A program made the translations under genes and the position numbers. The notes beneath the pieces were generated by a model, which saw nothing but the letters and a program-made list of their open reading frames with translations, ran no database searches and was not told the DNA's origin. This document shows positions 9,967 through 57,583 of a stretch of DNA of 64,000 bases, one piece after another. The first letter of the stretch is position 1. Every line of letters starts with the position of its first letter. The stretch covers positions 119,357,741 through 119,421,740 of the forward strand of contig CM041465.1 in assembly GCA_023213395.1 (NCBI GenBank), in the 5' to 3' direction. The DNA comes from Cycas panzhihuaensis (lineage: Eukaryota > Plantae > Cycadophyta).

Positions 9967-10859
9967 GTTTAAGAGAGTGATAAGTATTCATCTAAGTATT
10001 CCTTTAACCCAAATAAATTATGAACATAACATAGAAGAGACAACGCAGGAATAGATCTTCAAGTGGTATCTCATCAACATCTTAGTTAGGCTCATCATGG
10101 TTAGTATTAGATTCATCTTCTAAATCAACATCAATAGTAAATGCTATTCTTTTTGCTTTACATACTCTACTATAAACAAGGATCTATTTCTCTAAGAATT
10201 TCATACAGAGACCAAATTTCATCCTTCTATTTATTCCATCAAGAGGAGCAAGGACTAAATTTGAAGAAGGTGTAATTATGGATTATTGTTACTAGTTGAA
10301 CTCTCATGAATGTGGTCATTATTCTACAAATTATAGGTGTAAAGAATAGGTATCATGTACAATATTAACAGGAACTAAAAACTCAGTATACATAGTGATT
10401 AAATGATATTACATAGGTACACGTTATTGACAGGTAGAAACCCCTTCTGGGGAAGAAAAAATACCTCTTAAAAATAATTTTATTGATTAAAACCTTTACA
10501 TATCTATGACAATTAGACCTGAACATGAAAACTACCTACATACCAAATAAAAAATAAAACCAGCCTTAAAATAGGCTTAATACAACCTGGCAACGTCCTC
10601 TAGATAGTGTCCTAGATTCTAAGAAGAGCTTTTTAAGGAGTAAGAGGTTCGTTGAAAAGGGCAGTTGCTCATTTCAATGAACTTACATGATTAACAATTA
10701 TTAAATATTAATTTTATAAAATTGACTTTAGTAACTTATATTAACATGTGACATAAAGCTAATATTAATATTTCTAGCATTCCCCTTTAATGTTAGCTTT
10801 TATATAATAGAAGATAAAGAAGGTCTTCATCATGTTGATCCCCCTTTGATAGAGACTTC

Positions 10860-13800
10860 TTTTATCTTTAATAAATCTTGTAGGTTTAAAAACTTGACTT
10901 CAGTCAATGATTTGGTAAGGATATCAACAATCTATAGATTTATGGGACAATACGATAAATGAATAATATTATCAATAATAAGATTACAAATTAAATGTTG
11001 ATGTAATTCTATATGTTTAGTTCTAGAATAAATAACTGGATTGGTAGAAATAGTAATAGCACCTTGATTATCGACTTTAAGTTCTATAGAAGAGTTAGGA
11101 AATAGACCAATTTCATTTAAAATAGATTTGATCCACAGTGCTTCTTTACTTACTTCAACAAGTACTCGATGTTCAGCTTCTGTAGTTGATAATGCTAGAG
11201 CTTGCATTTTTTTAGTAGACCAAGTAATAGGTAAGGAATCTAGGAAAAAAACATAACCAGCTGTTGATTTTCGATCATTGCAGTCTATTTCCCAATCTAA
11301 ATTAGTATATCTTATTAATGTTAGAGGATTATTATAAAAGTTATAGGTTAGGTCATAAAAAATAGTATTTTGTAGATATCTAAGAATACATTTAGCAACC
11401 TTCCAGTGTGATTCATGTGGTTTTTGCATATATCGCAAACATAGAGAAACAGCATAAGATATACCAGGTCGAGTATGTGTTAGATAAATTAGGCTGCTAA
11501 TAAGCTGCCTATATAATATTGGATCATAAAGTGGTGTAGAATAATCAGTAGATAACTTAACTCTTGATTATAAGGGATTAGAAGTAAGTTTAACATTTTC
11601 CATGTTAAACCTTTTGATTAAGTCTATAATGTATTTTGGTTGAGATATAGTTATTTTTTAATCATATTAGTAAATTTATAATCCAAGAAAATAGTGCAAA
11701 AGACCTAAGTCGGTCATTTCAAATTTATTCATCAAGATTTATTTTAGTTAATGAATATTATTAGTAAAAGATCCTATAATAATAATATCATCAACATATA
11801 GAATTAATATGGTAATATTCTTATCTTCACATCTAAAATAGAGATTTAGATCACTAATACATTTAATGTATCCATTTTGAGTAAGATAATCATCTACTTT
11901 TTTGTACCAAGCTCAAGGAGCTTGTTTCAACATGTAAATTAATTTCTTTAGTTTATAGACTAAGTTAGAATTGTCAATAAAGGCAAGAGGTTGAGTTATA
12001 TAAATTTTTTCTTTGAGATCATCATTTAAAAAAGCATTCTTAACATCTATTTAATAGATTTTTTAACCAAATTTGGCTGTTAGAGTAATAACAGTTTTAA
12101 TAGTATTCATTTTTGTAATAGGTGCAAAGGTTTCATTATAATTGATACCATCAATTTGTGAGAAACCTTTTACAACTAAGCAAGCTTTATATTTTTCAAC
12201 AACTCCTAATGAATTAAATTTAGTTCAATAAACTCATTTACAATTAACTAGATTCTTTCCTAGCAGTAAAGTAACAAGATCCCAAGTTGAATTATTTTTT
12301 TAAGCATCTATTTCAACTTGCATGGTATGCTGCTATATGGGATTGCTACTAGCTTGTTTAAATGTTTTAGGATCATCATTTTCCATTATTTTGGCCATTA
12401 GTGCATAATTAGTTTGTAATTTTTGAGAACATATTTTCCTGGTATTTAAAGGATTGCCTACGTCAGATCCAACATCAGAAAGAGTTTTTTTTGCCCATAC
12501 AGGTTATTTGTTTATGACAGTTTCTGTAGTCATAGGTTAATAAGAAGAACTAAATTAAGATGAAGGATCTATTACAATTAGTTCAGATAGAGTCCTGTTC
12601 TAGACTTGTGTGGATAAGGATTTTATCATTTCAGAGTTAGTTTTTTTTTTTTGAGAGGTTAACCAAATAAGTATTAGTTAACAAATTCTCAATTGGGAGT
12701 TCTATGTAAGTAGAATTTGATGTAGATTCTTCTTCATCAAATATTACATCATTTAAGATCGAGATCTTATGCGTGATTGGATCTAGAAGTCTATAAGCTT
12801 TACTTTCTTCACTGTATCCAACAAAGATGCAATTTTTACTTTTAGGATCTAGTTTCTTATATTTTTCTTTGGGAATGTATCCCCGCATAATACTTCCAAA
12901 GATTCTAAGATGTTTAACTGAAGGCTTATGACCAAACCATTTATGTTCTTGCCTAACATTCTTTAAGGTCTTACCAAGTAGATGATTTATGAGATAGTTA
13001 GAGCAAACAATTACTTCTGCCCATAACTTTATATCAAGATTCTTTGCATGTAGCATGCATCGAGTTATTTCGACTAGAGTACAGTTTTTATATTTAGTAA
13101 CACCATTTTGTTGTGGAGTATAAGCAATGGAATGTTGAAATTAAATTCTATATTTCTTACAAAAGGAAGTAAACTTTCCACTTAGGTATTCTTTAGTATT
13201 GTCAGATCTAAAAATTTTAATTTTTGAGTTTGATTGATTTTTGATAAGTGTTTTGAATTTAGTAAAGATGTCAAATACTTAATTACAAGTCTTGAGTATA
13301 TACACTCAATGTTTTCTCAAAAAATCATCAGTAAATATGACAAGATAATGATTGCCAGAGTATAAAGTTATATGGAATGGTCCACATATATCAGAGTGAA
13401 AAAGTTCAAGTGGAAATTTCACTCTAAATTGGGTTTAATGTGGAAAGGGATCCATGTGTTGCTTACCTATTACACAGGCTTCGTAGATACCATAGACAGT
13501 ATTTAGAAGTGGAAGACCATGAACCATATCATGTCTTTTTAGATAGTGAAGTTTTCCATAGCTAGTATGGCCAAAGTGTGCATACCATAATTTATTGACT
13601 GGGTCAGATTTATCTATAAAGGTATTAAAGAACTTTGTTTTAGTATTTTGTAAACTAGTTAAGCTATAGAGACATGTTTTATGATCAACGGGTCCAGAGG
13701 CAATAGATTTGAATTTATCTTTTTAGAATTTGACAAGAAGATCTTTCTAACAGATTTGGTAAATAGAAAGAATATTTGGTAACAAACCAGCCACGTAGAA

Positions 13801-14783
13801 TATGTCCTTGATTGAACCATCTTTCAGAGTGACATCACCTGATCCTTTTTCTTTGAGTTAAGATTCACTCCCAAAAGAAATCTCTTCTTTAGAGTTAGTA
13901 TCAAATTGATAAGTAGATAAATTCTCCTAGTGTCATGTCATATGATAGGAAGCACCAGAGTCAAGAATCCATTGCAGTGATATACTAGATAGAGCAATGA
14001 AGGAAGAGATGGAAGTAGTTAAAGAATGATTATGTGATTGGGGTCAGGTTTAAATTCCCTTAGAATCTTTCCAAGCTTTTGAAGCTATTCTATTTCTATA
14101 GACATCAATGGTATGGCCTTTTTTGTGGCAATAAGCACAATTGATGTTCTGTAAAGGATTTATAGTGTTCTGATTTGGAATGAATTATTTAGAGGTATTC
14201 TGGTATCTTGGTGGTCCAAAATACTTAATATTATTTTGAGAAGTAGATGGTGGACCTCTGTGAGGTTTCTAAAACTTACGACTACTATTGTAATTATTTT
14301 GATATTTATTTTTATGTTGAGGTTTCAATTTTAAAAAGAAAGCCTGAGAAGGATCCTTTAATTTTCTAGTTTGAATCAACATTGTTTGGTATTCTATAAG
14401 TTGATTTGTCAACTGAATGAAGGTTATTAGTGGATTGCCAGCTTATTTTCTAGTAGTCTTAAAGAGATTAAAATGCTTTAGAAGTTTATTTATTGCTAAC
14501 CGAATGAGTGTATTGTCATCTTTGGCATGTATGACTTTTTCTTCTTTATCACCTACTTTTACTATAGATTTAATACAATTCCCTAGTTCTTTGTTAATAA
14601 GTTAAATTTTGGATAAGAAATCTTCAACTTTAGAAAAGTCATCATACTTGAAGTCATATAGTTGTTGTTCTATGACAGCTAATTATTGTGCATCAACCTT
14701 GTCATATTTCTCCTTAAGGATTTTCCAGATGGTGGCAAGATCATCTGTATCAGAAAATTGCTGACTAATGTCAGGTAAAAGAG
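10860..14783 (-). pseudogene. Copia C gag-pol remnant (gag C-terminal part, PR, INT, RT, RNase H)
   Basis: ORF 10932-11438 is RNase H (WSTKKMQALALSTTEAEH, DNQGAI, RTKHIE). ORF 12637-13056 is the integrase C-terminal region (KLDPKSKNCIFVGYSEESKAYRL). WILDSGAS protease motif near 13950-13975. The gag N-terminus lies at ~19565-19780, beyond insertion D. Confidence 0.9.
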
Positions 14784-16429
14784 TGTTGAGATTTTAACAT
14801 GGAGAACATTCAACCATAAGAACAATATCAACATCCAGAGAATCACACAATATAATCAGAATATATTACCATACAAAAAGCACCAAGGACTCAAGGTGAG
14901 CCTTGATGATGTGATATCTTTATATACTACCTCAACCACCTTTATATACCAAAGAGGTGGGAGACTATTCAACACAAGTAATGCATGTGGGACAAATACC
15001 TTTGTCCCCACCAATAGCATTACACCACTAACTTGACCAATACATTTATATCCTTTTACATAGTATTATAATTACCTTTTGACCCTAAGACTTAGGACTA
15101 TCACTTATCATTCTAGGACCCACACACATTAAACATTATTTCTAACACCTCCCCTTAATGTTTAATGTTTGAACAAATGACAATTTGACATACATTGACA
15201 CTTGACATGAATTTGAGACTATAGTCATTAAAGACAACATGACAAGACTGACATGACTACCAATGACTCTAATGTACTTTATCTTCTTTGAATCTCCACC
15301 GTCTTGATCTTGGAAAGATCTTGAACACCATGTCTTGGGCATGGTCTTGGTCTTCAACCTTGTAGTGTCCTTTGAATTGATGATCCTCGGGCTTTGCCTC
15401 TTTCAACTTCACACATAGTTGAGAATCCAAGTAGTGAAACATGGATAATTCAGAATGATCCTGCATATCTTCAAGATGTCTTTCAAACATGTCTTCTATC
15501 ACTGCTTCCTTCTCCCCGCTCAAGATGTGAGTGACCATGAGACATTAGCAATATCATTATTATCCAAGTGCAACAATGAGTTGTCAATTGTTAAGGCACC
15601 ATTATCCTCCCCTGAATCAATGGGCTTATTGAGACGAGTTCCTGCAAGTTGTGTGATACACCCTATTTTCTTTGTGTCACTCAAGAAGTTCCATGAACTA
15701 AGTACAATGAGAATCTCCATGATACTCACATGCATATGCTTCCTGATTATGGATATACATACATGGATCATTATTTCAATCTGATTGACTTTCATCATCA
15801 GGTAACCTATCCAGAAGGAAATTTGATTTCGATAAGTAAGATCCTGGTGACATGAAATCCTCCTTATGTTCCTCTGAAAGCAACTTCCTAGTGCCGCTCT
15901 AGGATATGTTATAATTTTGATCTTCTCAAAGATGAGAGTGGAAAATGTAATCGAGTTGAGGGAGATCATGAATATTTTCCAATATATGCCACCATCGTAT
16001 GACTGTCACCATTTGAATTCTTCCTATCAACTTTTCAACGCAAACTAGGATAACATTATCCATACCTTTTATTAGGCAACTCATGTCTCCGTGAACTCCA
16101 TTCGAGGATTGATGCCTGAAATTTTCAGCGTCCAGAGCTAGTTCCTTTATGAGACTTACGATTTTGTCACGCTGCTTTTCCTTCTTTTCTTTCCTCTTCA
16201 ACTTCTTCCTTTGATTCTTTGCCCTCTTGATTCTCTGCTGCTGCATTTCTTCGTGTCCTTTTCATACACTTCCAAGAGTTTCCAAGCATCCTCACCGAGT
16301 CCATATTCAGAGAGCCCGGATAATGAAGTGATAGGAAGATGGGAGGTCATCCTTATCAATGGTCGCAAGTATCACGTCGACAACAATTGCTCTTCCTTTT
16401 GAAGGTTTCCTCCCTTCTTCATGAGCCGC

Positions 16430-16510
16430 TTTTCCCCCATGGATGCTTCCCAAAGTTTCTTGACTATAAATAGACTTTCCATCTTGATTTTCCAAAATGA
16501 AAATTAGTTC
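16430..16510 (-). pseudogene. Copia gag N-terminal remnant inside D
   Basis: Reads TNF/SFWKIKMESLFIVKKLWEASMGEK, matching the Copia gag N-terminal pattern NF.LWK.KM...L....LW. Confidence 0.6.
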
Positions 16511-17078
16511 AGGTATTTGGGTAGAGAAAGCAAAGATCTGATAGCCAATATTCATTTCTATCAGGCACAAAGGTGATAATGTTACTTAACTCCATAGTCT
16601 ACTTCAATTTGAGAAACAAATCGACAAGGAAATATTGGAACCGAGTGCTAGAAAAATGCTCACGCCGCACAACAATCCTTATAACAGTCCAGGTTCCTTC
16701 AAATTTTCGTGGCTGCTATCTTCAGATTTGAGGTGTCTTTCTTTTCTGCTCTTTGTTGCCAGTTTACTCAGGTTCTACTGTTAACCTTATCACAAGGTAT
16801 GAATGTTGCTGCTGAGCCAACGAATCGCGGTGCGCAATGTTCTCCTACTTCATGTGTATACCTGCAAAAAAAGGGAGTTTCCTGCCAAGACTGCTAAGGC
16901 TGTTGCTCTTCCAGCCAGCTGCCAGGACTTGTTCCTCTTTCAACTTCATTAACCAACTGGAATGACAATGATCCCGAACTTTGTGTGAAGCTTTCTTGTG
17001 GTGCAACTTGTCAATACCTGGAATCATTGTTTCTGCACACAATATGAGTTCCTCCAAATGCTTTGCTAGTAGACTCGC

Positions 17079-17365
17079 CCAACATAGAAGGCATTATGCC
17101 TCAAACCTGCCTCGAAATAGACCCATGAGGAACATAAATCTTGCCTTGTCAATAAATGTGTATAAAACAATAGATCATTTGCTTGTGGTCCTCTATTAAA
17201 GTCTAGAGTCGCTCCCCATTCATCACCGTCCTGAGCGTTGAATATCCCGCACTCCCGACTCAACAAATCCCTAGCACACGGTTTTAATTGCACTAAATTG
17301 ATGGGATCCACATCAAATCCTAGAAGCTGCAAAGTAAATATAGCATATTTGTTTCCAATATATCC
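17079..17365 (-). pseudogene. SOS4: Captured pyridoxal kinase (SOS4/PdxK-like) fragments
   Basis: GYIGNKYAIFTLQLLGFDVDPINLVQ (17285-17365), ..QANDLLFYTHLLT (17148-17209) and GKIYVP..SML (17079-17147). These are colinear with plant pyridoxal kinase [27 protein letters not shown]...EANDLLFYTHVLTG...EGKLYVP. Confidence 0.9.
17216..17269 (-). pseudogene. Possible CYP86-clan P450 fragment inserted in the PdxK piece
   Basis: DLLSRECGIFNAQDGDEW resembles the CYP86/94/704 motif DLLGxGIFNxDGxxW. Only 18 codons. Confidence 0.45.
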
Positions 17366-17995
17366 CACGCAGTGATGTCAAGCCCGCCTCGCAAATTCCA
17401 ATCTCTACAAATAATGCATTCAACTATCTTTTGGCCTATACTTAGCTCGGATCCATTTACTTCCTATCGCAGTTCGACTGACACCTCATAGTCTCTACAT
17501 GATGGCTCTGCGCTACGTGCTTTGATGACTCAGCTGCGGAGGTCTCTTCTCACGCCCTTGTCATGAGCTCGCCTTTAATCATCCATACTCGAATGTCCTT
17601 TGCTCATGGTCAGCGAAAAACTTTGACAAAATATTCCACTGTGGCAAGATGCAGACTATTCTATGGCTATGCAGGAGGTTTCGTCATCATATCTCGCACA
17701 TGCAACGAAGAATATCTTACTCTTTTGACAGTTCTCACTAGTGACAAAATCAAAGTCATAGGCGCATATCTACATTCCCTTTGCGGTTGAAACTATCATA
17801 GCTTTCAATAGGACCACCAATCTTATCCAATCGTTATTTGGGGTTAGGACCAAAATTGTTTACAGGGATCGTGCGTTGGAGTGGAGAAATGGATGTTGCT
17901 AAGGCACCAATCAGAGCACAACCTGAATTTCAACCTCAATGATGAGATGCCCAAACCACATCCGCGAGAGCGCTCGTATTTATTTCCTTCACAAC

Positions 17996-18225
17996 AGGTG
18001 TCGCTTCAAAGCAATTGATATATTTACTAGCCAGAAGCTTGAGGATATAGTTCCTTTTTCCACAACTGTGACGTTCCTGAAGTCACACATACTGATTATC
18101 AACTGATTGATGTTACAGAGAATGGTTTTGTGAGTCTTCTTACGGATAGACAGGTGATTGTTAACCTGCGCCACCAAACAGAGACAAGCACTACTTGTGG
18201 CCAACTCAACAGCTGAGTGTCATGC
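17996..18225 (+). pseudogene. eIF5A: Captured eIF5A mRNA fragment, antisense to D
   Basis: CRFKAIDIFTSQKLEDIVPF/HNCDVPEVTHTDYQLIDVTENGFVSLLTD (17999-18147, one frameshift) matches plant eIF5A [49 protein letters not shown]. A degenerate LR..T..ALL..SVM continuation runs to ~18225. No introns. Confidence 0.92.
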
Positions 18226-18422
18226 AGAGACTTAGCCACACAGCCGTCTCACAGTTACGCAGAGAAGGGCATACATAAATCAGCAGAACATTAACAGGAG
18301 GACTTGTTAAATCACCCAAGCGCTGGAACCAGGAGAGGGTTACGCCTTTTTCACAGACGGACTCCTCCTAGTAGATGAACAAATTTACACATAGGGCAGC
18401 ACAAGGCAAATCTCAGATTGTG

Positions 18423-18540
18423 CAACTTCGCTTCATTACTCATGCAAAATGTCAAGGCAGTCATGCAAACAAATGCAATGTTGGGTGGGATCAAACTACA
18501 AAGCTTGGCGATGGGGAATCCACTAGTAGTTAACGCATAA
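18423..18540 (+). pseudogene. Possible serine carboxypeptidase-like fragment
   Basis: QL/ASLLMQN...IKLQSLAMGNPLV resembles the SCPL pattern PQLA.LL..N...IKLK.IA.GNPLL. Confidence 0.4.
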
Positions 18541-21081
18541 TCTAGAGGCTTTTACCAGAATATTTTCTGTATGGAAATTATGATACATAGACTCAATGTT
18601 CTTTCTCCTTAATCATCAACCAGTTGGTCTGCAGAGACTGCTTTCTTTGTCTTATTCTTGTGCTCAGAAACAAGACCCTGGTGCCCAAACAAAATCTTCA
18701 ATTATCTCCTTTTTTGCAGTCGGCTTCTTCTTCTCCTTTTTTCTAATGACAATTCTTTCTCGGAATTTCTTGTCATGGTGGTTTTTGACAGAGGAAACGA
18801 GGTTTGCATAACCTTTAATTTCCGCCAACCAAATCTCCAATATTTCCAAACTCTAACAAGATTTGTAAGGACATAGTTTTACTTTCACCAAACAGAGTTC
18901 AATAGCCAACGATTCAGATTTATTCGTATGTCAACTAATTTCTTCATAGAGTAAACCTTAACACATGGCTACTCCTCATAACAAGGTAAAGGAGTGACAT
19001 TACGGTGAACTTCCGCCAGCATCGATCCTTGGCACACTTCTTATCAACAATGGCCTAGAAACTTTTCTTCCAAATCGATCTTCAATCAGGCACCATCTTA
19101 ATGGAGCCACCTTCTTGCTTGAATGCTTTGTTCTTCACTGGACTTCTCCTCTATCAATCTTCAGACTTGCAACAGGATGGCCCGCTCTGATACCATGTTG
19201 AGATTTTAACATGGAGAACATTCAACCATAAGAACAATATCAACATCCAGAGAATCACACAATATAATCAGAATATATTACCATACAAAAAGCACCAAGG
19301 ACTCAAGGTGAGCCTTGATGATGTGATGTCTTTACATACTACCTCAACCACCTTTATATACCAAAGAGGTGGGAGACTATTCAACACAAGTAATGCATGT
19401 GGGACAAATACCTTTGTCCCCACCAATAGCATTACACCACTAACTTGACCAATACATTTACATCCTTTTACATAGTATTATAATTACCTTTTGACCCTAA
19501 GACTTAGGACTATCACTTATCATTCTAGGACCCACACACATTAAACATTATTTCTAACAAAGAGATGATAGGATGGTACCTAGGGCTACATCACAATTCA
19601 TCATATAGACCATATAGTTTTCTAATTTTTCATCTTTGGGTTTTGTAAATTCACCTGTAATATATTGCCATATCTTTTTTTATTTAAGCTGATGGGATAT
19701 TTGATTTTTCCAGTTGGCATAATTTGAGTCATTAAAACTATAATTGGTATACAGGGGGTTGAACTTAGCATGAATTCCATTATGGATACAAAATAATAAT
19801 TAAATATCCTCTTGAAAGAGGTTTTGTCAAGTTTAGAGATCCTCTCGAAAGAGGTTTGACAAGTTTTACTATAGGTGAATTAATGGGTCACAAAACTTAT
19901 TGATAACCAATGAACATTAAAGGTATCCTTTAACTTTTCATTGATAATCAACAGAAATATTTTAAAAATTATGACATAATAATGAAAGGAATTGGAAATC
20001 ATTATTATTTATTTAGTTTGTTTGGATACCCTTCCCTTAGAATAAAATATTCCCCTTTGTAAAAAAAAATATTATTATTCCCCTTGTTACTTTAAGTAGC
20101 TTAATGAAAAGAATGATTAGTGTTAAAGAGGTTTTATAGTAAAAACTTGATCAATTACAAACTATAAATGAAAGAGTTTATATGTTGATTAGGTGACTAA
20201 AAATGCTCTAAAAACAACAATTTACATAATAAGACTAGTGAAGGGTGTTATACAGATAATTACCCTTTAGTTATCTTTTTGAAAAATAAAATAAAAATTA
20301 TGTTTGAGTGTTTTAAATTAAGTGAATAAAGAAAGAAATTAAAAAAAGATTTAAATGATTAAATGAGGGGGTATATATATTGAGTTGTATTATCAAATGG
20401 GGGGTAAGCCCATTAAAAAAATGTGTTTTAATTAATTAGATCACTTTAAATGCTACATCATTTAAAGATTGGGTATTAATAAGGAAAAATATGGGGGTTT
20501 TAATTAAAACTTAAAAAATAAGGGAATTTGATTAATTAAGGAATATCAAATAAAGGAGGGGTTTTGAATTATTGATTAACGCATTATGTTGAATATAATA
20601 AGGGGTTAATTATTTAATTAAAGTTAAATGTAATAAGGGGGTTTGATTTATTTTGAATTAAATAAAAAAAAAATTGGGGGAGGGAATATGACGGACCTGA
20701 ATAAAGTATTAATAAAATAAAATTATTCTGACATTTACAAAAATATTAAGATGTTCTTAATTTTATTTTGGGGTCCAAGGGGAGGAGGAAACCCTACCTG
20801 GTTCGAGGTGATTAAGGTGGCAGTGTTGGATTTCAATATGCATTCTTCAACTCAGTGGAGGTAGCGATGAGGAATTACAATCTACATTCTTCATCTATGT
20901 GTGGTCTTCCTCTCTAGCTTTTGAGGTAGCGATGGCATAGGCAAGTCTGATTAGTAGGAAGTAGATAGAGGCATCAGCTACTAAGGTGGGGATGGAATAG
21001 GTGGGTCTAATAAGTCATGCTTTTTCTTCTGGTTTTTATGAGTTTGGAGGCCTGGTTTTAGAATCTTTTTCTTGCAGGTTG

Positions 21082-21510
21082 ATGGCAACGAACAACTGCT
21101 ACAACTCCAAGAGAAGTTTGTTATATTATAGTTGTAAAACTCATCAACCTTCAGAAATCTCCCAGCGTGGCTATTATTGATGTAAGGGATGAAGAGAGGA
21201 GCTATGATGGGTATATAACAGGTTCCTTTTACTATGATAGCAATACATTCAAGATCAAATCCTAGAGCTTCTTCAAAATATGAAGGGCAAAGATACCCTT
21301 GTCTTTCACTATGCCTTGAGCAAGGTTCATAAACCATCATGTACTTGCATGCTTGTATAAGCTTTGTCAAAACATGATTATGTTGAAACATCAAATATTC
21401 AGAAAATTCTTGTTCTTGAGAGAGGCTTTAATGAATGGCAAGCTACAGGATGGCCTGTTTATCAATGCATGGAGATTATTTGCAAAGGTTCCAAGATAGT
21501 TATGACGTAA
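21082..21510 (+). pseudogene. CDC25: Full-length intronless copy of plant CDC25-like dual-specificity phosphatase / arsenate reductase ACR2 (rhodanese fold)
   Basis: MATNNCYNSKRSLLY/..[122 protein letters not shown]. This is colinear end to end with Arath;CDC25 (IAIIDVRDEERNYDGHIAGS..KDTLVFHCALSQVRGP..ILERGFNGW..GKPVCRC). Two frameshifts and one stop. Missed by the ORF track. Confidence 0.95.
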
Positions 21511-23846
21511 CTTACACCCAAGGATTTGAATTTCATTCTGAAATTTGAACTTGGGACGTCATTTTGTTATCTGTCAGTAACAGTAATCTTATTTGTAGGC
21601 TATTGCCAGTGAGCTATGGTTGGAAATGGGAGATTCCTGCATGACTTATCTTAATGCTATCTATCAAAAACAAAGTCAAGCCAAGACTATTGATGTTTAA
21701 GATATTGATGGTTATAGTACTCTACAATCCACTTACATCTTCAATGTAAACTAGAAGAGGCAATGGAAGGCTCTAATACCATGTAAAGAATAGTTATCAT
21801 GTACAATGTAAATAGGAACTAGAAACTCAGCATACATACTGATTAAATGATATTGCATAGGTACACGTTATTGGCAGGTGGAAAACCCCTTCTGGGGAAG
21901 AAAAAACACCTCTTAAAAGTAATTTTATTGACCGAAACCTTTACATATCTATGATAATTAGACCTGAACATGAAAACATCGTACATACCAGACAAAAAAT
22001 AAAACCATCCTTAAAACAGGCTTAGGACAACCTGACAGCCTTCTAGATTCTACGAGGAGTTTTTTAAGGAGTAAGAGGTTTGTTGAAAAGGGAAGTTGCT
22101 CATTTTAATGAACTTACATGATTAACAATTATTAAATATTAATTTTATAAAACTGACTTTAGTAACTTACATTAACATGTGACATAAAGCTAACATTAAT
22201 ATTTCTAACAATAGGTACTACTACTAACTACAATCCCATCAAATGTTAGATTTACAATCTATTGAAAATTCTACTTCTATTACCTTAATCATGGTGATGG
22301 CATCTCTTAGAGTTGGAAGGGTAAGTGTCTTTAAGAACATTTGAATGTACTCCTTTAGTCCTGATGTATATACTTTAATTAGTGTTGGGTAGTTGAACTA
22401 TTAGGAAACTTTGTTAAAGAGTTCCTAAAACTCTTCTATGTATGTTTCAACTATCATAGTTTACTTTAGTTGAGTAAGTTAGCTAAAGAATGATTTATTT
22501 CAAGTACCATCATATTATTCAAAGAAATTCTTATAAAAGATGGCCCATGTATGAACAAAATTTTCTTTCTATTACCAATGAAATTAATGGTGGACCTTAC
22601 TTTCTAAGTGGATAGAAGTAAAGGTTAACTACTTATCAGGGTCCATAGGGTTGAGGGTGAAGTATGATTTAAGTTTAGTTATCTAGCTTCTAACCAAGTC
22701 CCTATTGAGATTGAAATCAAATATAGGTGTATTGATCTTGTGGTTCCATGGGTTTTGCCTTAGCATTAGCAATGTAGGTACTAATAGAGGTGATCTACCT
22801 GTCAAGTTTAAGGGATAAAATGTATTGACCATAACTATTAAAATTTTAGTCAACTCTGTGGTGACATATGCCATCTATGTTGTGAAATTATTAGTCATGG
22901 ATGTGAGGTTATTGTTGAGATTGATAATGTCTTTAAATAAATCATCTTTTATTTGTATTATATTAGTTTAAATAAGTGACTTGTGCTTCTATTGCTTAGA
23001 TATTTTTAGTTTATATAGGGCCATTGTACTTGTATCTACTACTACTGTGAATCATTATAAAGAAGAAGGGAATGTAGGGAAGAGGGGTTAACAAGTAAAG
23101 AAAGGGTCACTAAGAAAAGGAATGAGAAAGGAAGAATAGGATCCAAGAGGTGGAACTAATGTAAAACGATGGGAGGTAGAGGTGATTATAGCATATTAAC
23201 CTCCTAGGTACATATATGTAGATGGGATGAGAACTAGGTAACAATCCCACTCAGTTCATCACAATAAGCATGATGAGCTCATCAAAAAAATATAGGTGAG
23301 ATTATATCTGATTTTTGGGCATGTAGGGTACACTTTCCATTTTTTATTAAAAAAATATTTGAGATTAACTTAACCCAAAATAATCAATGTAACATATTGT
23401 TTAAAATAAGATGTATAAATGACTAAGTGAAATTTTTGGCTTGATACTCTTTTTTTTCAATCTTGAGTCTACTAGTGCAAGTTTCATTTAAATTAAACAA
23501 GTATTTCTTAAAGTGACCTTATAGACTAGGTGGTGGCCTTTCCATTTTTTTCTTTTTTATTATTTTGTAAGAGTGCAAACTCTGGACTGAAAAATTAGGT
23601 ATGGGGATCAAAAATTGAACTAAAGTTTTGGGCAAAAATCCTTCAAATATTCTATTATCTTTGTAATATAGGTTAGAGTTGTCATGTTATTGTGTCTGTA
23701 ATATAGGTTGTTATTGTCATTATATTAGTATTATAATTTTAGTATTCTTTTATAATTCATAGGTAGATGGTTGTTTTAATTCTTTTTGAACATTCAATGA
23801 TCTTAGTAGATTACGTTATTTAATAAGAAATAATAGAGATGAGCAG

Positions 23847-29055: not shown

Positions 29056-32000
29056 TATTAGAAAATACTAAAAAAATAGACAAGATAGGATTATTTATGT
29101 ATACAATAGTCATAAAATGAATAAGCATATGAGGATAGATTTGATATAAGAAACCCCTTTAGGAAAAAAACTACCGTAAATTTATAATATTATATTTTTA
29201 TAAATATATCATAATATTACAATAAACTTGGATCCTTATTTATAAATCTATAAGTACCTCAAATAATTACATTTGGATTGCATTTGTTAACCTAATATTG
29301 CATAATATTGCCTCATTTACATTAATTAGATAAGTGGATATAATACCACTTTAACATCCCCCCTTAATGTAAATGTGGATTCTAAAAGTATTCCTAGGGA
29401 TTATTCTAACTCTTTATCCTTGTCAATAGATCTCCTTTTAAGGATAACTTCACTAAATCCCAAATTTACATAAACTATGATAATGTAATATTTGGTAAGA
29501 GCTTAGTAAATACATCCTCAAGTTGATCTTTACTTAGACAAAACTCAACCTACACCTTCCCTTATCTGATATTCTCTTGAATATAATGGTGCTTTGCCTT
29601 ATATGTATGTGATTCTTTGGAAATTACTCCAATAGTCCTTGTAATAATATAGCTTCTCTCGCACCAGCACCTAGTCCATGGTACTTAGCCCTTTTCCTTT
29701 ACTAAACTAAGAAGTTGAGCCACTTTAGCCATGTAGATCTTCTCTTCAAGTCTCTATAAAGGAATGTTGACTTAATATTCATACATTGTGACTCCCAACT
29801 ATATGTAGCTACCAAAGTAAGGATTGATCAGAATAATGACATTTTAGAGACTAGTACAAATGTCTCTTCACGGTTGATTCCTTCTTTCTATTTGAAACCC
29901 TATGCATTAAGTCTTATAAACTTACAACTAACTAAGTTCTTTCTTCAAAGATAAAGGAAACAAATTCCATATATCATTCTTCCTCTATTATAACTCTTTA
30001 TTACGAATCTCCTCTTGCTCAAATTATTGGTATCTATCACAAGTTTGACTAGCATGCTAATCCTTATTCTCTATCTATCCTTTAGATCTTCAACTATCAC
30101 ATCAAAGTCCTTAATAGTCCTCCTAGCCCCCAATGGAACATGGGTCATAAATTGTACCTCTTCTTGCAAGGACTTCTCATCATCACTCTCACTAGTTCCT
30201 AGTTCCATCTCAAACATAATATTAAGCACATAGACCTCTATACCTATTAAACCACAACTCAAAAAAGGATGAAATAGAGCATAAAACCTATTTTCAAATG
30301 ACCACTTAACATGATCTATCATTAACTTATCTAATTTGATATCCAGATTAATCACAATGTTATTCCCCCTATAAATCACATAATCTATAAGCTTTGTTTT
30401 AATCATAAACTCCATATAAATATTCTTCAAACTCTTGTGATCCAAGCTGTTGTGATCTTTATTTAAGATGTGTGCAATCAATATACCTAAATAATCAATG
30501 GAAGATTTTTGACTAGTTTAACATACTTCAAGGGTAATATCTTAAGCAACCTTAGAAGAGGCCCCATTAAATAACTAATGTAATAACTTCTACCCAAAGA
30601 CATAGGAGGTAGAAACTTACCATGTACCAAACACCTCTACATCTCCATCACAGTACCATTCTTTCATCTACAACACAATCTTATGTGGGGTACACATAAC
30701 AAACAACTCTTGTTTAATACCATGATTAAGGCAAAACTGATTTTAGGATGGTCGTGCCATACACCTTTCCATTATCACTTTATTTTCAATATAAACAAAC
30801 TAACTTTCCTACATCATACTTATCCAGATATGTATTAATGTTGAACCAACATCTGATAGGCTATATACCCCATCCTACTATCTATTTAACCACCCAAAGT
30901 ATAACAATCCACTAAGAACTGATAACCACTTATATAAATAGGCTAATAGATTGTAATTCTGAACCACTTTACCTCACACATCTAATGTAAAAAGTCACTG
31001 ATATGAATTGAATAAAACACCACTTTATAATAAATCAATCACACCTTTAGTAGTAAATTACAATGATCAAAACCACACCATTTGCTCAGCCTACAATTTA
31101 TTATATCCATAAAACATACATTTTTATTAATTAATGAGCATACACTAGCATTGATATCTTGCCCATTAGTCACCACTAATATGCCTTCTAATCGATCAAT
31201 GAAAGTCCACTGACATTGATATCACATATAATAGTCACCAACAGAGTGTCCAAAAGTGCTCACTTTACCATCAAATCAATGCCTTACTCACATTTCATAT
31301 CACCAAAATCAAATAATCCCTAAAATAATTCATCTGCCTCATACATTGTACAATGTAAATTTACCATAATACGCCCACTTGAACTTTTTGAAAAATCCCT
31401 TCATTGAATACTAGACAATATAAAAAAAGGAAGACACATATGTATTACCACTTGAAATAAGCCATCACTTAAATATTTCAAAGGCAAAACAAATACCCCA
31501 ACTTTATTCAAAGTCCCATATATCAAATAAAAGGTGATTAATCAAAGGGTAGTTATTATGTAAAGGGTAATGACTTAATATAGGTGATTCATCCTTAATG
31601 ATTGGCGATCAAATATCTCATACATTCACTAATATCATTTAACTTTTATAACATAATATCAAACGAAATTGATAATTAAATCAATGTATTAAAAAGGTGA
31701 TGAATTATATATTGATAGGCAATCAATATACATTAATTAATACAGCCATTAAATAAACCTTTGATTTGTGGTGACTCATATCAATGATTAAATATTCCAC
31801 CAAATTGAATCAATGTGAGTAAAATATATATCACAGTATCAACATTTGATTAAATATATTAGTAATCAATATATATAAAGGTGATACGTGAATAAAAATA
31901 ATGGGCAATAAATATTTAAGAGAATACCTTTTTTTTCTACTGTAAATACATTCATGGAAATCGTGTATTATATCTCTCATGGTAAACCTGCAAAATACCT

Positions 32001-42722: not shown

Positions 42723-44228
42723 TTGACCTCCTTAATAGACCTATGCAATTTTCCCCCTTAGGCTAGTGTGCAACATGTTAGGGGAGATAAAAGACACCTC
42801 TTAACCTTTCTTTTTAAGTTAGGACTTGGTTAGAATAAAAGTTATTTATGTTATATAGAAACAAAAATAAAATTATATTTGGTCATTGGTCTCATTCTAG
42901 AGATTTCATCTCTAATATAAAATATGTTCTATTAAGGAGTTGTGTTGTGTAGATCAATGCCCATATAGATAAAGTATATGTGGAACTCTTTCATTTTCTA
43001 GAATTAATTAACCACTAGGAATATGCTCCTTGTTCATTAAGTTATATCTTGTCAAAGTCAAAAGTTATTAATTTATGATAAGCAAGCAAAGAGCATAATG
43101 ATTGTGACCCTCAAAGTGAATCTTAGAAAAGTAAATGAAAATCGTCCTACCCTTCTAATCCATGACATGCAACTTATTATACTATACATCCCAAATTCCT
43201 ATAAGTAGAGGGCCAAACATGAAGCCTCATTATAAGGCCTCCACCTTTTATAATTGGTGACTACCTCATTAAAATAATAAAAATGATAACAATGATGGTT
43301 GGGGTTAGGGATAGGGTTCTAAATAATAGAAGGAACATGTAAATCCATAAATATTTATGCTTTTGAGCCATGTTTTTAGCAACTTTTACTTCTTTATTTA
43401 TTTGTGATTTCAATTATAGTTGTAGTAGTATCATCCATGGGACAATCTTTATCTCCCTTATTTCTTATTATAATTATTTATAGTATTATTTATCAATAGA
43501 AGTTATTAAGTTGAATTAAAACATAAAAAATAAAAAAACATTAGAATTTACTTTCTCTATTGTCTTTTAGATGATTAATAAAAAAATCCCCAATTTTACC
43601 CATAAAATTATGATTCATGGCAATTAGTACATGCCTATTGCAAATAGTTAACACAACAGCCCTCTGTAATATAGTTCTTAGTAGTAAATTTGATTTAATA
43701 AATTAAACACTCACTTTCTCTAGCACAAATACATAATGTATTAGAAAAATGATTGGTTAAAGATAAAAAGTTATTAATTTTATAAATTAAAAATATGGCT
43801 AATTAAATATAAAAATTAATGTGGAAAGTTTAAAATGTTGTTAATTAAATAATAAAGTCTAGATTCACATAATTAAATCCTTTATTGTTTTATTTATATA
43901 TTAAAAGTATGGTTGGTTGAATATGAAAGTGTTATTTTCCCTAATAGATGTTGTTAAGCATAATGTATCATTATATTTTTGTACCCTAAGATTCTTTTTA
44001 TTTATGCCATAGGCTTTATTTTAGCAAATCCTACACGTTTTATACTTTTTACATGTACTTATCATTCTTTTTATATGTATTTGTACTATGCTCCTTCATT
44101 ACATTCATTTAATATAAGTAATTATATTTTAGTGAAGGTATTACATTCACAGTATTTAAAGTGTCCTTAATCTATTGCATGGTATCAAAGCATGGATCAA
44201 TACTTGTGTATTGAAAAAGGGTTAATAC

Positions 44229-47200
44229 TAATAGAAAATATAATTTTAAAAAAAAAGAATTTTGTTTATTTGATTAATGAGAGAGGATAATCTCTCTTAT
44301 ATACAATAAATTTACATAATTAATTTGTACATAAATGGCAAATATCATCTTATGTATCAAGTATTGTCTTAAGATGAAAGAGGGACAATGACACCTAACC
44401 CTCAAGTTACATAAAGAATACTATAGTACAAAGTTTAGGATAAAACATTAATATTCTAACACCCTCCCTTAATATTTTATCATTTATTTTTTATTCCAAG
44501 TAGATCCCTAAAATACTAAAATTTATCTTTTGATAGTGGATTTATGAAGATATCTACAATTTGTTGATCACTGTTGCAATATTATAAATCAATCTCTTTG
44601 TTATAGATATTTTCTTTGATGAACTTCTATGTGTTTGGTCCTTGTATGGAAGACAGAATTTTTAGTGAATTTGATCATAATTTAATTGTTATAATAGATT
44701 GTAGTTACTTTTTCATATTGTTGATTTAAATTATTCAAGAGTTATCTTAACCAAACTACTTCAAAAGTTGCAGTTACTACAACTTTATACTGTACTTTTG
44801 TTAAGGACAGAGCTACTATTGGTTGTTTTTTGCTGCTCCATGATGTTACAGTTATTCCAAGATTGAAGCAATATCCTGATATGAATTTTTATTCATAAGA
44901 CTCTTTAGCCTAGTCAAAGTTAATGAATCTAATTAAGCTTGGTTTATTTACCTTGACATATTATAGTCCAAGATCTAAAGTGCCTTTGATATACCTTAAG
45001 ATTCTCTTAGAAGTATTCCAATGAATGGTTTTTAGATTATGCATGAATCTAGAGATGACTCCAATAGAGAAAGATATGTCTGCTCTGATAGTTAATAAGT
45101 AAATAAGATTTCCAATTAATTATCTAAAGAAAGTTTTATTTACTTCCTAATATTTGTCTTCACTAGCAGTTTGAATACAACCTACTTCCATAGGTATGAC
45201 ACATGCATTACATTCATCCATATTGAACCTTTTTAAAAGATTATTAGCATACTTGGTTTATGAGATAAAGATTCTACTTTCTACTTGTTTAATTCCTATG
45301 CCAAAATAATAGTGAATAGCACCGATGTTAGATGTTTCAAAATTATTTTCCATGTGTTTTGATCTAGCGAATGGTTTCTCGATCATTGCCTGTGATAATT
45401 AAGTCATCTACATATATTGTTATTATAGTGATCAAATCTTTTTATTTCTTTATATAAAGACTTGGATTAACTTCATATCTATTGAAACCACTTTTCTGAA
45501 GATGACGATCCAATTTAACATGTTAGGCTTTAAGTGCTTATTTTAGGCTAAATAATGCCTTTTTAATCTACAGACCAGATGTTCTTCTCCTTTCTTTAAA
45601 TATCTAGGTGGTTGTTCCATATAAACTTTTTCAATGATATTAGAAAGGCATTTTTTACATCTAATTACACAAGTTCCCATCCATATTAGGCTACGAAAGT
45701 TATAATTGTGCAAATAATTATTAACTTTGCCACAAGAGTAAAGTTTCTTCATAGTCGATGCATGTTGTCTAAGCATACCATTTTGCTACAAGTCAAACTT
45801 TATATCTTTTAACACTTCCATCTGGATTTCCTTTTATTTTATATACCCATTTGTAGTCTATAATAAGCTTATCTTTTAGCAGAGAATCTAATTTCCAAGT
45901 GCTATTTTAGTTTATGGATTCCCATTTCTTTGTTTATGACTTCTTGCCATTTTATTTTCTGGCATGCTTCTTTAGAACTTTAAGGTTCTACTAAATAGGC
46001 CAAAGCTTGATGCTTTTAAGATTTTGTTCTATGCTCAAACACATCTCTTTTTTATTCTTCAATTCTTTTTAAATACCACTTAGGTAATCTTTTCTCTAAG
46101 ATATCCTCTTGTCTTTCTTCTTCAAACAATGTTTCTAACTCTTCTATGTCTTCTTGAAAAGTTTATTCTTCTTTGTCTTCCTAAGAAGCTAATTCTTCCT
46201 CAACTAGGCTATTTTTATTGGTAGATTCTACATTTTGCTCTAATATTATGTCTTGTTTATAATAGGTAATATCTTTACTGATTAAGATACTTTTATCAAA
46301 GGTTATATCTCTGGTTACATAGATTTACTTTGTTTTCACATATATGCAGAGATAAGCTTTTAATTTTGAACTATATCCAATCATAATGCATTTAATGTTT
46401 TCATCATTTAATTATGTTCTTTTCTAAGTTGGAATATACATGTAAGTAATGCTTCCAAAGGTTCTTAGATGATTTATATCTGGACTTCTGCCTATTCATG
46501 CTTTCTCTGAAGTAACTTCATCAAGCACCTTTGTGGGATATTTGTTTATTAAATAAACAGTAGTATTAATTGCTTCAAACCAATATATATTTAAGACATC
46601 TTTTCTTTTATCATACATCAAGCCATTTATGTTATAGTTCTATTCAACCTTTTAACTACTCTATTTGACTATGTTGTATATGAAGTAGTGATTTGTCTAT
46701 GAATGCTATGAATTTTATAAAAAATTAAAAATTCATTTAAAACATATTCTCCAGCTCCGTATGTTCTAAACATTTTTATTTTGTACCCATTTTCCAACTC
46801 AACTTAAGCCTTAAATGCTTTAAAGCAATAAAAACCTTCAAGTTTATTAAAGATGAAAAACACCTAAGTTTTTTTAGTAAAGTCATCTATAAAAGTAAAA
46901 AAATACCTAACACAATTTATAAAGTTTAGTGTGATTGGTCCACATATATCACTATGAACTAATTCCAATTTTTCTTTTGATCTCTAATTACTTTCCTACA
47001 ATGACATTTTGTGTTGTTTACCTAACATATAATTTTATAGGAGAAGGAATTTATTATGAAATTAGTAGGCAACCCATTAACCACATCAAGATTTTTTAGC
47101 ATTTTTAATCTATCATCTACAATGTGACCATTGCAAGAATGCCAGATTTCATTATCATTATTCTAAATAACAAAAGTTTTTATAAAAGAAATAATAGGAG

Positions 47201-49462
47201 TGGAAACTAAGTTATAAGGATTGCCAGTTTCCACTCCTTCAGCAATGGTTTTGCCTCATCTTCTCATATCAATAATATAACATTTTTCATCTTCATAAAA
47301 AATTATTTAAAGTTTCTTCTTTCTTAATTGTGATACATAAAAAAGATTTTTCTTCAAACCTAGAACAAATAAAACATTACCAATTTTCTTGATATCCTAC
47401 TTAGTTTAAACTGCTATGGTTCATTTGCCTTTGATCTTCAGAGAATAATCATCACCCAACTCTATAATTTTATCTATCAAATATGGTTGTAGGGTTTTGA
47501 ACCAATCTTCTCTTCCAATCACGTGATTTGAGGCGTTGGAGCCAACGAACCAATCTTCACTATATCGAGTGTATGAGACTAGGGCAGCAACAAACGCAAT
47601 CTCTTCTTCGTCTTCATCTTTGGGTTGTTCTTTACTGTAACTACCTTCAACACACTTACCCTTTGAAATGTTAGCTCTTTTATAGAAATAATTGCTAAAG
47701 AGATATCCATACCTGCTACAATAATAGGAATCCTGACTTTTTATTGTTTTATATTCTATAATAATATGACCAATTCTTCTACAACGATAACATACCTATG
47801 TATCTGATGATCTTCCTCTATTTGATCCTCTAATAAATCTTCCACTATCAGTTCTTATCTCAATTGATCTTCCTTGTGTATCTCTTCCTCATTCACCAAT
47901 CGTGAGCCTTGAAACAAAGGCTTCTTCGACCTTTGTTTCATCTTTGTATCTATAAATTCTCTACTCTTATTAAAGAAGATGACCACATAAGGTATCAAAT
48001 AACATGGTTCTAGCTTGTCCTCTAATAGTAAGAGTGTTTATTAAATTATCAAAAAAAATTAGAAATTTGTTAAGTATTAAGAGAACAATTTCGGTATATG
48101 GTATTGATTCACCTGCAAAGGCCAAATTGTGTTTGATTTCTACTAATTTGGTAAAAAAGTCTATAACTTATTCACCCCCCTATAAGTAAAGCTGATAAAG
48201 TTGTTCTCTCATAGTGATAATATAGGCTTCATTCTTCTAGCTATATACTAAAGTAAGAGCTTTCAAGGCTTCTATTAAGGAAGTGGCTTCACTAATGTGT
48301 TAAGATCGAATCACTTATGCATAGGGTAATTATGGCTAGAGCTTGTTTATCCCTTTCTTCCCAACTAACTATTTTTACAACATCAATAGTTGGTTTCCTT
48401 TCCCGTTTAATAGCAATATCCCATGCATTCTTTGTAATTAAAAGCCCCCTTATTTTAATTTTCTAAACAACATAATTGTGGCCTATTAACTTATCTAATT
48501 CTCCTAAAGAGTAAATTGTGGCCATTTTTTAGTGCTCAAAAAGAAAAAATATAGATTCTGATTTTTGAATGGTTGTGGTAATCCAAATTTATACAACCAT
48601 ACAAATGTATAAAAGAAGTACAATTGTACAGAACCTCAAAATAACCCCCTCAAAATTTTGTCATTGACTTCGTGTACAATGATTTGAAATCAATTTTTGG
48701 AAAGCAATTCTAAATTTGAGAAAAAACACTTGAAGTAAAAAAAACGCAACTTGGGTTTAAATTATATTTTTGCTTATAACTTCAAAAATCCTTTGTGAAA
48801 TCTTGCAATCTTACACTTAATGGAAAGCTTATGACATAAAGAGAAGTTTAAGACCACTTACTCAGTCTGAGACAAAAAAAAGAAAAAAGAAATCTACTGT
48901 AAAAACAAGAAACCTATGCACCTCTTTCTTCACAAATTTTCACTTATCGAGGCTGAATTTATAAATGCTACCTTGAGATAGCAAAATATATTCGAACAGA
49001 CGTTTATGCTGGTAAAATTTCACTTGATCTTGAGCACTCTAATTTTTCTATTTGTACAGGTCCATACGATTCCGTACTATACTGTATACCTTTCTTTAGG
49101 CTTTAAATTTCTTTAAAATTTTATTTTTTTGCTCCTTTCTCAATTTCTTAGGCACATAGACTTGATATTCTAATTTGGCCTCAGTTTGTTTGGCTTCGAT
49201 TTGTCTTCCTATTAGACTTGCTCTAATACCATAATAGAAAACAGAATTAAAGAAAATAAATTTTATTCATTTGATTGATAAGAGAGAGTAATCTCTCTTA
49301 TATACAACAAGTTTATATAATCGATTTGTACATGAATAACAAATGTCATCTTATATAATAAGTGTTATCTTAAGATGAAAGAGGGACAATGACACCTAAC
49401 CCTTAACTTACATAAAGAATACTATAGTACAAAGTTTGGAATAAAACATTAATATTCTAACA
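44229..49462 (-). mobile_element. Element J: full-length decayed Ty1/Copia
   Basis: LTRs 44229-44461 and 49232-49462. PBS 49220-49231. PPT 44462-44470. RT motif VYMEQPP..KKGEEHLVCRLK in ORF 45543-45776. The TSD is only partly conserved. Confidence 0.9.
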
Positions 49463-52286: not shown

Positions 52287-52496
52287 TGTTCAGAAACATG
52301 AATTCATACATATATATGTTCCTATCCACAGAATCTTTAACCATTCGCAATAAGCAAATAGATATATACACAAAATACAAATGCACAGTACACAAAATTT
52401 ATATGGAAAACCTTTTCAGAAAAAAACCCACCACAAAAGATTCTTTGGATTATATTGATTACACACCAATTGACATATTGATATACAAGGGTTCTA

Positions 52497-52558
<62 letters not shown>

Positions 52559-55500: not shown

Positions 55501-56977
55501 AGTGGGAAACCAATCCAACAACATAAGCGATATTTGGTCTGATATGAGTCAAGTAAATTAAACTCCTTACTAACTGGTGATACTTCGTTCCATCTACAGA
55601 GGGTTTGGCCATATCCTTCTGCAATCTTGCATCCCTAACACATGGTGTTAAAATAAGTTTGTAATTCTACATCCCTAACTTTTTCAATAAGTTCTTCACG
55701 TACTATAACTGCAATAACATGATTCGATCGTCCATCTACCTGATTTGAATGCTTAAGAAATAGTGAAATCTCTCGAGGTCTATCATGTCAAAAGAAACTC
55801 CCAAATTGGACTTGACTTTTGTTAGTCTTGTCGCAATTTCCTCCAATGATCAAATCATCGACATAAACTACACAAGAAACTCTCATTTTCACATATAAAT
55901 TTAGATTGAGTTCAAAATTTTTGAAACCTCCAGCTTTTAACTTAGCATCTATCTTCTCATACCAAGTACGAGTTGTTTGTTTCAAACCATAGATTGATTT
56001 CTTTAACCGGCATACAAGATGCTCCTCACCTTCCTTAATGAATCCCATAGGGTATGACATATATATCTCCTCCTTTAGATCTCCATTAAGAAATGTAGAC
56101 TTGATGTTCGTCTAGTGTAACTCCCAACCGTAAGTAGTTGCTAAAGAAATTATTAAATGGACCATCGTCATCTTAGATACTGATGCAAATGTCTCCTCAT
56201 AATCAATTCATTCTTTCTATTTGAACCCTTAAACAACAAGCTTAACCTTGTACTTGTCCACCTCTCCATCTGCGTAGAACTTCATCTTGTAGACCCACTT
56301 ACATCCAACAAAGTTCTTCATCAGAGAGAGCAAAACCAAATCCCATGCATCATTCTTTATCAATGAACCATACTCTTTCTCCATCACAGTTCTCCATCAT
56401 GAATCTCCTTTTATCTCTTCAAATGAATTAGGATCACTAAAGTTGTTAGTGTCTACTAGCAAAGTTCAACTCGTATGATGACTCCTTGTTTATCTTTTAT
56501 CAATAAAGGTATGCATCACCACACTAGAATCTTCAATAGTCTTCATTGCCTATAATGGTATAGAAAAGCATGTTACTAGAGGTACTTCTTCTCGCAGCAG
56601 CTCTTCACTATTACTCAACCCACTTGGTCATGCTTCCTCATGTATTCATATGTATATGTTCCTATCTGTAGAATCTTTAACCATACACAACAAGCAAACA
56701 AATATATATACATAATACAAATGCATAGTATACAAGATTTACGTGGGAAACTCTTTTGAAAAAAAAGTCCATCACAAAAAATCTTTTAAATCATATTGAT
56801 TACACACCAATTGAAACATTGAAATGCAATGGCTCTAGGATATATATATCCTTCCAAGAGGTGTCACCCAACAAGGATTGTGACCTTCTAAATATCTCGC
56901 ACATTTTTGCTAATCACTATTAGTTAAACCACATGAACATTAACTTAGTAGCTTTACAAATAAATGCCATGTTAAAA
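52287..56977 (-). mobile_element. Element K: tandem dimer LTR-(RT-RH)-LTR-(RT-RH)-LTR, Copia deletion derivative
   Basis: LTRs 52287-52684, 54528-54842 and 56639-56977. Perfect TSD CAAAG at 52282-52286 and 56978-56982. Two homologous RT/RH interiors, each with a PPT. No PBS, gag or INT core. Confidence 0.9.
52499..52556 (+). repeat. (AT)29 microsatellite in the left LTR of K
   Basis: Perfect AT run. The other two K LTRs have only about 5 units at this site. Confidence 0.95.
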
Positions 56978-57583
56978 CAAAGAAAATGGTAGAATATTCT
57001 TGCCTCAAACCAAGTATGCCAAAGAACTATTATTTAAGTTCAACACAGCAAACTCTAAAAGGTAGATGTAAAATAATCACAAAAGGTCAAGGTCTAGTAG
57101 TAAATGTAACTCTATACAAGAAACTCGTAGACAACTTAATATATCTCACTTTTACCTGCCCAAACAATATGTATGCTCTATGAATTATATCAAGATTCAT
57201 GAACAATTCTCATGAAGCGCATTGAAAAGCAACAAAAAGAGTATTAAAATATATGCAAAAAAAACCTAGAGTTTAGTTTGAAATACATTCAAAAACTAGA
57301 TTTCAAACTTATTGATTACAATTATTCAAATTAGGCAAGAGAAAAGAATGGCCAAAAGACAACTTTAAGTTATTGTTTCAATCTTGATTCAAAAGTAATC
57401 TCTTAGAACAACAAAAAATAATCTTCAATTTTTCTTTCATCAACAAAAACAAAGTACAAAGTAACTATGAAAGCCACCTGTGAATCCATTTGGTTGAAAA
57501 AAATGTTAAAAGATTTGGTATAGATCCAACTTTTTCCCACCATATTTTATTGTGAGAATCAAAGTATAATGAAATTTGTAATA

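Follow-up and report, generated by a model that had tools for sequence, protein, structure and literature searches.

How does a copy of a host gene come to lie back to front inside a long terminal repeat (LTR) retrotransposon, close to the primer binding site (PBS), and does it serve any function there? This question is raised by a 64,000-nt stretch of the Cycas panzhihuaensis genome (assembly GCA_023213395.1, CM041465.1, positions 119,357,741-119,421,740 of the forward strand), referred to here as the window, whose own coordinates are used throughout. A minus-strand Ty1/copia retrotransposon of this window, element C, carries between its PBS and gag, on the opposite strand, a sequence related to the plant CDC25/ACR2 genes, which we call the cargo. 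It is the position and orientation of this sequence, rather than the encoded protein, that proved informative.

An antisense CDC25/ACR2-like sequence within a Ty1/copia element

The CDC25/ACR2 family consists of small rhodanese-type proteins with phosphatase and arsenate reductase activity in vitro and an HCX5R motif (PMC4251824). Plus-strand pieces of 21107-21510 match the CDC25 protein of Arabidopsis (PDB 1T3K; At5g03455) with E values of 1e-10 and 9e-9. When full-length gymnosperm proteins were used as tblastn queries, two collinear and gap-free high-scoring segment pairs were obtained at 21101-21250 and 21253-21495 (63-67% identity, E ~1e-40), which together represent residues 30-161 of a 162-residue protein at 63-64% identity. 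The best CDC25 match among 1.8 billion representative proteins was a Ginkgo protein (69%), followed by other plant ACR2/CDC25 proteins. The Pfam Rhodanese profile reached 17.9 bits on a 44-aa piece of the cargo, which is under its cut-off of 22.2. The gag of element C starts at about 19780 on the minus strand, as judged from its translation and from weak Pfam matches to Retrotran_gag_3 and DUF4219, and thus these results agree with the initial annotation of this DNA, which had placed a CDC25/ACR2-like sequence opposite to the element between the PBS (21769-21781) and gag. A metagenome scan with a conifer-type CDC25 protein returned only relatives of 30-35% identity and no plant transcript with an untranslated region (UTR).

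Element C is a single integration unit, an autonomous-type Ty1/copia retrotransposon on the minus strand (Table 1). Its two LTRs (442 and 429 bp) can be aligned over their whole length, start with TG and end with CA, and are bounded by a 5-bp target-site duplication (TSD); their Kimura two-parameter (K2P) distance of 0.098 identifies element C as an old insertion. A polypurine tract lies beside the 3' LTR and an initiator tRNA-Met PBS beside the 5' LTR. The latter, TGGTATTAGAGCC, agrees at 12 of 13 bases with the canonical PBS for this tRNA, the single mismatch being a transition, and the PBS pattern was found five times in the window compared with 0.27 matches expected by chance, which supports the site originally annotated. 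The Pfam matches on the minus strand (RVT_2 at 11751-12224, integrase SH3-like at 12640-13140 and gag_pre-integrase at 13438-13722) place the integrase ahead of RVT_2, that is, in the order by which Ty1/copia elements are recognized. Since the paired LTRs and the matching TSDs enclose the cargo, the latter belongs to one integration unit. The leader between PBS and gag, about 1,990 bp, is far above the usual length. A homology search with the RNase H piece of element C yielded a sole match, in Pinus taeda (47%).

The cargo is a decayed pseudogene

Rhodanese-core homology extends over the full length of the cargo, its secure part beginning at 21095-21101 and not upstream, and the terminal TAA is located at 21508-21510. 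Neither the HCX5R loop nor an open reading frame was found. One nucleotide has been lost near 21251, an in-frame TAA interrupts the sequence at 21358-21360, and the catalytic loop reads HYALSKVHK (21307-21333), as first annotated, with both the Cys and the Arg of HCX5R lost. In addition, Tyr replaces a conserved C-terminal Cys at 21460. The core is not in the frame of the ATG at 21082, and to fit this ATG as the parental start about 16 extra bases have to be assumed, so that the start region is uncertain. The gene had been described as full-length and complete; judged by these alignments, this would apply to the conserved core only, which is collinear with its homologues.

The mode of decay was examined with contigs of four public runs (three organisms), which were compared with positions 19000-22700. 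Thirteen of the 14 well-supported differences in the coding sequence (CDS) between the cargo copy and other contigs fall at codon positions 1 or 2, and hence there is no hint of constraint. The core contains one frameshift and one stop, the number of lesions expected from neutral decay since the insertion, and we found no sign of cargo function. The cargo is a dead pseudogene that has decayed like neutral DNA. At 21329 and 21332, in the loop, and at 21358, in the stop, most of the other contigs carry another letter, and therefore the loop changes and the stop arose in the line of this copy or in a subset of copies. The notion that G>A changes dominated this decay did not hold up, as the differences between window and contigs are near symmetric (G>A 112-129, A>G 100-107, C>T 89-102 and T>C 101-112).

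As an observation apart from the window, the 142-aa predicted protein P0002 of a public set (source ERR1711915) is a CDC25/ACR2 sequence that runs out of frame after about residue 100. To judge from this entry, there is a frameshifted conifer-like copy elsewhere.

Spliced origin and 3' end of the cargo

Conserved introns of the family were placed by aligning 155 plant proteins to a full-length reference and using the breaks in gene models as a proxy. Alignment to the family is lost immediately behind ALSQ/K(V) in at least 21 plant gene models of truncated or read-through type, among them Ginkgo Gb_07788, and this indicates a conserved intron after ALSQ/K. The cargo reads uninterrupted over this site (AGC AAG GTT CAT, 21319-21330), in agreement with the continuity between ALSK and V that had been pointed out initially. 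The lack of the one conserved intron that could be placed argues for a spliced-mRNA origin, and the cargo, as far as one intron site can tell, appears to be a copy of a spliced mRNA. The contigs that end at 21324 were also considered as a possible mark of an intron. This was rejected, because a contig of the same class continues to 21410 and because differences among the copies at 21329 and 21332 would stop contigs at that point.

The 3' end of the cargo bears no trace of polyadenylation. Within 21500-21790, A-runs do not exceed 5 letters and a poly(A) signal is absent, and the initial reading that a poly(A) tail is missing is thus correct. The 258 bp at 21511-21768 are presumed to be the CDC25 3' UTR up to the PBS. 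The initial annotation had a 3' UTR of about 260 bp run straight into the PBS; contig continuity with the CDS bears this out as far as 21571 only, and the stretch up to 21768 is still a presumption. Across 21511-21727, contig counts and depth match those of the CDS, whereas the LTR and gag have far higher values, in keeping with a 3' UTR that forms part of the cargo.

Other copies of the cargo

Each of the four runs contains 5-11 distinct contigs over the CDS. The ALSQ/K intron site is crossed by 2-6 contigs per run with at least 41 letters on either side, and therefore several intron-free versions exist per genome. A 649-nt contig spanning 20645-21293 at 96.6% identity probably represents the same locus in a relative. 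Contigs of 82-85% identity match 20761-21295, and therefore diverged copies have the left flank and the CDS in common with the copy of the window. The depth of the cargo, far below that of the LTR and gag, shows that the cargo-bearing elements are a minority of the wider family.

The cargo sequence is multi-copy and not a one-off, and most likely it spread with a Copia subfamily: its presence in several copies in four runs fits a cargo borne by such a subfamily better than a retrocopy acquired later and private to this copy. The original proposal of a Copia family that spread a host gene as cargo can be upheld in part, since a spliced copy resides in a TSD-flanked element of autonomous type and is multi-copy in four runs. 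The idea that this cargo was functional finds no support, in view of its antisense orientation, its broken frame and its neutral-like changes.

Proposed capture during reverse transcription

The data show the anatomy of the element, the spliced origin of the cargo at one intron site, its multi-copy status and its decay. The origin that we favour, with moderate confidence, is that reverse transcription in a progenitor Ty1/copia element took up a spliced CDC25/ACR2 mRNA of the host as a template and left its copy in the element, in antisense and apparently directly 3' of the PBS. The plus-strand strong-stop DNA of the element, whose 3' end is the PBS sequence, would anneal through a short match in the 3' UTR of the host mRNA. 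It would then be extended along the co-packaged mRNA toward the mRNA 5' end, and the extended product would switch back, in the leader, to the element's own minus-strand DNA. The resulting cargo-bearing element would retrotranspose, and the copy of the window would be one of its products, inserted long ago (LTR K2P 0.098), later split by a nested element, and decayed.

Priming by strong-stop DNA would account jointly for the reversed orientation of the cargo, for its junction with the PBS, and for the absence of both the intron and a poly(A) tail. Ordinary template switching during minus-strand synthesis fails to explain the case, because it gives sense cargo, and genes transduced by plant LTR elements are usually sense (PMC7264820). 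We infer that the capture preceded this insertion and that strong-stop DNA was the primer. The priming step would predict a short stretch of identity between the parental 3' UTR, just beyond the junction, and the primer tRNA at its 3' end. It also counts in favour of this origin that the second element of the window, nested in gag of element C, carries an antisense host-like piece as well, which resembles eIF5A (17939-18106; Pfam IF5A-like_N, E 1e-4) and lies about 1.1-1.25 kb from the PBS of that element.

Several points weigh against this origin. Both the match at the junction and the extent of the parental 3' UTR to the PBS are presumptions. In four of four runs, one contig class matches only from 21104 rightwards and has other sequence leftwards, one of these contigs reaching 21410 without the intron; therefore, there is a second cargo context, which permits independent captures or a later rearrangement. 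None of the contigs listed bridges the PBS junction, so the exact junction is not demonstrated in other copies, and contig depth is no copy number.

A wider proposal is that host mRNAs are captured again and again by the Copia elements of this genome, through a so far undescribed strong-stop route which places antisense complementary DNA (cDNA) behind the PBS, that the cargo elements then amplify, and that the CDC25/ACR2 sequence is one product of this route; this is possible and is put forward here tentatively.

Alternative origins

The same anatomy could have arisen at the DNA level. A CDC25 cDNA or retrocopy might have been inserted in the leader of an active progenitor, for instance as filler in double-strand-break repair, to be spread afterwards by retrotransposition, in which case the orientation and the nearness to the PBS are due to chance. 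Such a master element is compatible with the anatomy observed and with the multi-copy status, and filler insertions require neither a poly(A) tail nor a TSD. However, a junction at the PBS would then be a coincidence, of about 1 in 100 for a leader of such a size, and we regard this origin as rather unlikely.

There is less still to be said for a one-off event by which a processed CDC25 retrocopy entered the leader after element C had been inserted, by means of the long interspersed nuclear element (LINE) machinery or by repair. Processed retrocopies are common, the age of element C leaves ample time, and among the contigs listed none proves a PBS junction in another copy. Such an event is at odds with the several intron-free variants per genome and with the contigs that, at 15-18% divergence, carry the left flank together with the CDS, and no A-tail or poly(A) signal was found (a TSD belonging to the cargo itself was not searched for). 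The missing A-tail and the left flank shared by diverged contigs make a later LINE-type retrocopy, in particular, unlikely. Read-through transduction was rejected in view of the location of the cargo inside the LTRs and beside the PBS.

That selection kept the cargo, either as an antisense CDC25/ACR2 gene or as a source of antisense RNA or small interfering RNAs directed against the host gene, is highly improbable, given that the catalytic Cys and Arg are gone from this copy, which has acquired a frameshift and a stop, that the listed changes crowd at codon positions 1 and 2, that the gene is antisense to the transcript of the element, that none of the runs holding the stretch is recorded as RNA, and that the loss of ACR2 in Arabidopsis has no detectable arsenic phenotype (PMC4251824), even though the stop and loop positions carry other letters in most other contigs and antisense extra reading frames are known in some plant LTR elements (PMC7264820).

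Relation to known systems

The capture of genes by LTR retrotransposons is known and is very common in genomes of gymnosperm size; an antisense cargo that seems to begin at the PBS represents a variant of it. Captured host mRNA has been described for Bs1 of maize and as LTR-mediated retroposition in animals (Tan et al., 2016, PMC5131818; reviewed in 2026, PMC13317346), and about 400,000 captured gene fragments have been reported per gymnosperm genome (PMC13477047). The cargo resembles the Bs1-type cases in being an intron-free segment of a host mRNA that lies between LTRs and probably is carried along when the element is copied, template switching in the particle being the cause proposed there. 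It differs from them in being antisense to gag-pol, apparently from the PBS onwards, which points to an error of plus-strand synthesis and not of minus-strand synthesis. In the selection of papers covered by our literature search, which was limited, antisense capture beside the PBS or strong-stop priming on a host mRNA was not described.

Coding-like sequences antisense to gag-pol and present in more than one copy are also known from gene23 of Grande and from RIRE2 and Retand (PMC7264820). These reading frames occupy the interval from pol to the 3' LTR, belong mostly to Ty3/gypsy elements and are without a host homologue, whereas the cargo is placed in a Copia element, between PBS and gag, and can clearly be traced to a host gene. 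With LINE-type processed pseudogenes the cargo shares the nature of an intron-free, decayed copy of a spliced mRNA, and differs from them in lacking a poly(A) tail and in residing inside a TSD-flanked LTR element. Compared with plant CDC25/ACR2 proteins (At5g03455, 1T3K), its rhodanese-type core is collinear and 63-69% identical to the gymnosperm homologues; with its HCX5R loop destroyed, one conserved C-terminal cysteine lost and its frame broken, it is no functional representative of the family.

No biological role of the CDC25 copy itself is visible, and its relevance resides in the mechanism that its geometry implies. The step of reverse transcription at which capture takes place has mostly been guessed, and the geometry found here points to the second (plus-strand) transfer. 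If true genome-wide, this would add a defined route to the mechanisms of capture, and it would explain a cargo that is mostly backwards and, consequently, rarely expressed as protein from the promoter of the element.

The leader, the nested element and other structures of the window

The leader to the left of the cargo (19781-21094) may consist of further captured pieces or may be native. Between 20200 and 20800 its GC content is 0.22-0.25, with a plus-strand skew of G over C of +0.44 to +0.71, which means few G on the sense strand of the element. A part of 275 bp (20371-20645) is absent from some copies, as contigs of two runs join 20370 to 20646 via AGGT. The GC-richer segment at 20760-21094 may be the 5' region of CDC25 or another captured piece. 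Compared with shuffles, the 80 bp before the ATG at 21082 (21001-21081) showed no excess score against the N-terminal extension that gymnosperm CDC25 proteins have, and for this reason we make no claim to the presence of the CDC25 5' end upstream of the cargo. No further fragments of host genes were seen when every reading-frame piece of at least 28 aa in 19781-21110 was searched with Pfam, Tandem Repeats Finder gave nothing meaningful on the leader, and a second copy of leader or cargo was not found within the window.

Table 1. Structural features of element C and of the element nested in it, in window coordinates.
Feature	Position	Strand	Evidence or remark
TSD, left copy, ATAGG	10333-10337	.	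Identical 5-mer at 22211-22215
3' LTR of element C, 442 bp, TG..CA	10338-10779	-	Aligns with 21782-22210
Polypurine tract, AAAGGGGAA (minus strand)	10780-10788	-	Immediately adjacent to the 3' LTR
Decayed pol and C-terminal part of gag of element C, Copia order	10935-14783	-	Pfam matches; many stop codons
Young non-autonomous Copia-type element nested in gag of element C, 4,776 bp	14784-19559	-	364-bp LTRs with 3 differences; TSD AAGAG
N-terminal part of gag of element C	19560-19780	-	gag frame continues across the nested insertion; weak Retrotran_gag_3 and DUF4219 matches
AT-rich leader, GC 0.22-0.31	19781-20759	-	Composition profile; no Pfam match on any reading-frame piece of at least 28 aa
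GC-richer segment left of the cargo, containing the ATG at 21082	20760-21094	.	Fewer distinct contigs than for the CDS
CDC25/ACR2-like processed pseudogene, rhodanese core and terminal TAA	21095-21510	+	tblastn, PDB 1T3K; antisense to element C
Presumed 3' UTR remnant of the captured mRNA, up to the PBS	21511-21768	+	Contig continuity to 21571; depth at CDS level to ~21727
PBS, initiator tRNA-Met, TGGTATTAGAGCC	21769-21781	-	Directly after the LTR end ...TTTACA
5' LTR of element C, 429 bp	21782-22210	-	Aligned with 10338-10779
TSD, right copy, ATAGG	22211-22215	.	Identical 5-mer at 10333-10337

The nested element is a later insertion, foreign to element C, that splits its gag. It has a perfect initiator tRNA-Met PBS of its own at 19183-19195 and an interior without pol. 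By eye, its minus-strand reading frame at 17066-17368 resembles the N-terminus of pyridoxal kinase. The DNA that flanks the insertion of element C (22224-22700) is itself repeated, with many contigs of 80-97% identity and numerous internal joints.

An Rfam scan of the window gave no match. Elsewhere in the window, 31 bases separate a plus-strand PBS (44180-44191) from a 239-bp stretch behind it with 86% identity to 49224-49462, the PBS and LTR end of a minus-strand element (the whole arrangement occupies 44178-44461 and 49220-49462). This backwards PBS and LTR end just behind the PBS of another element could be the result of nesting or an aberrant product of reverse transcription. Finally, the region 52300-57100 is made of about three tandem units of about 2.1 kb (2,111-2,206 bp from start to start, 70-86% identity), a 168-bp part of which also matches 29744-29911.

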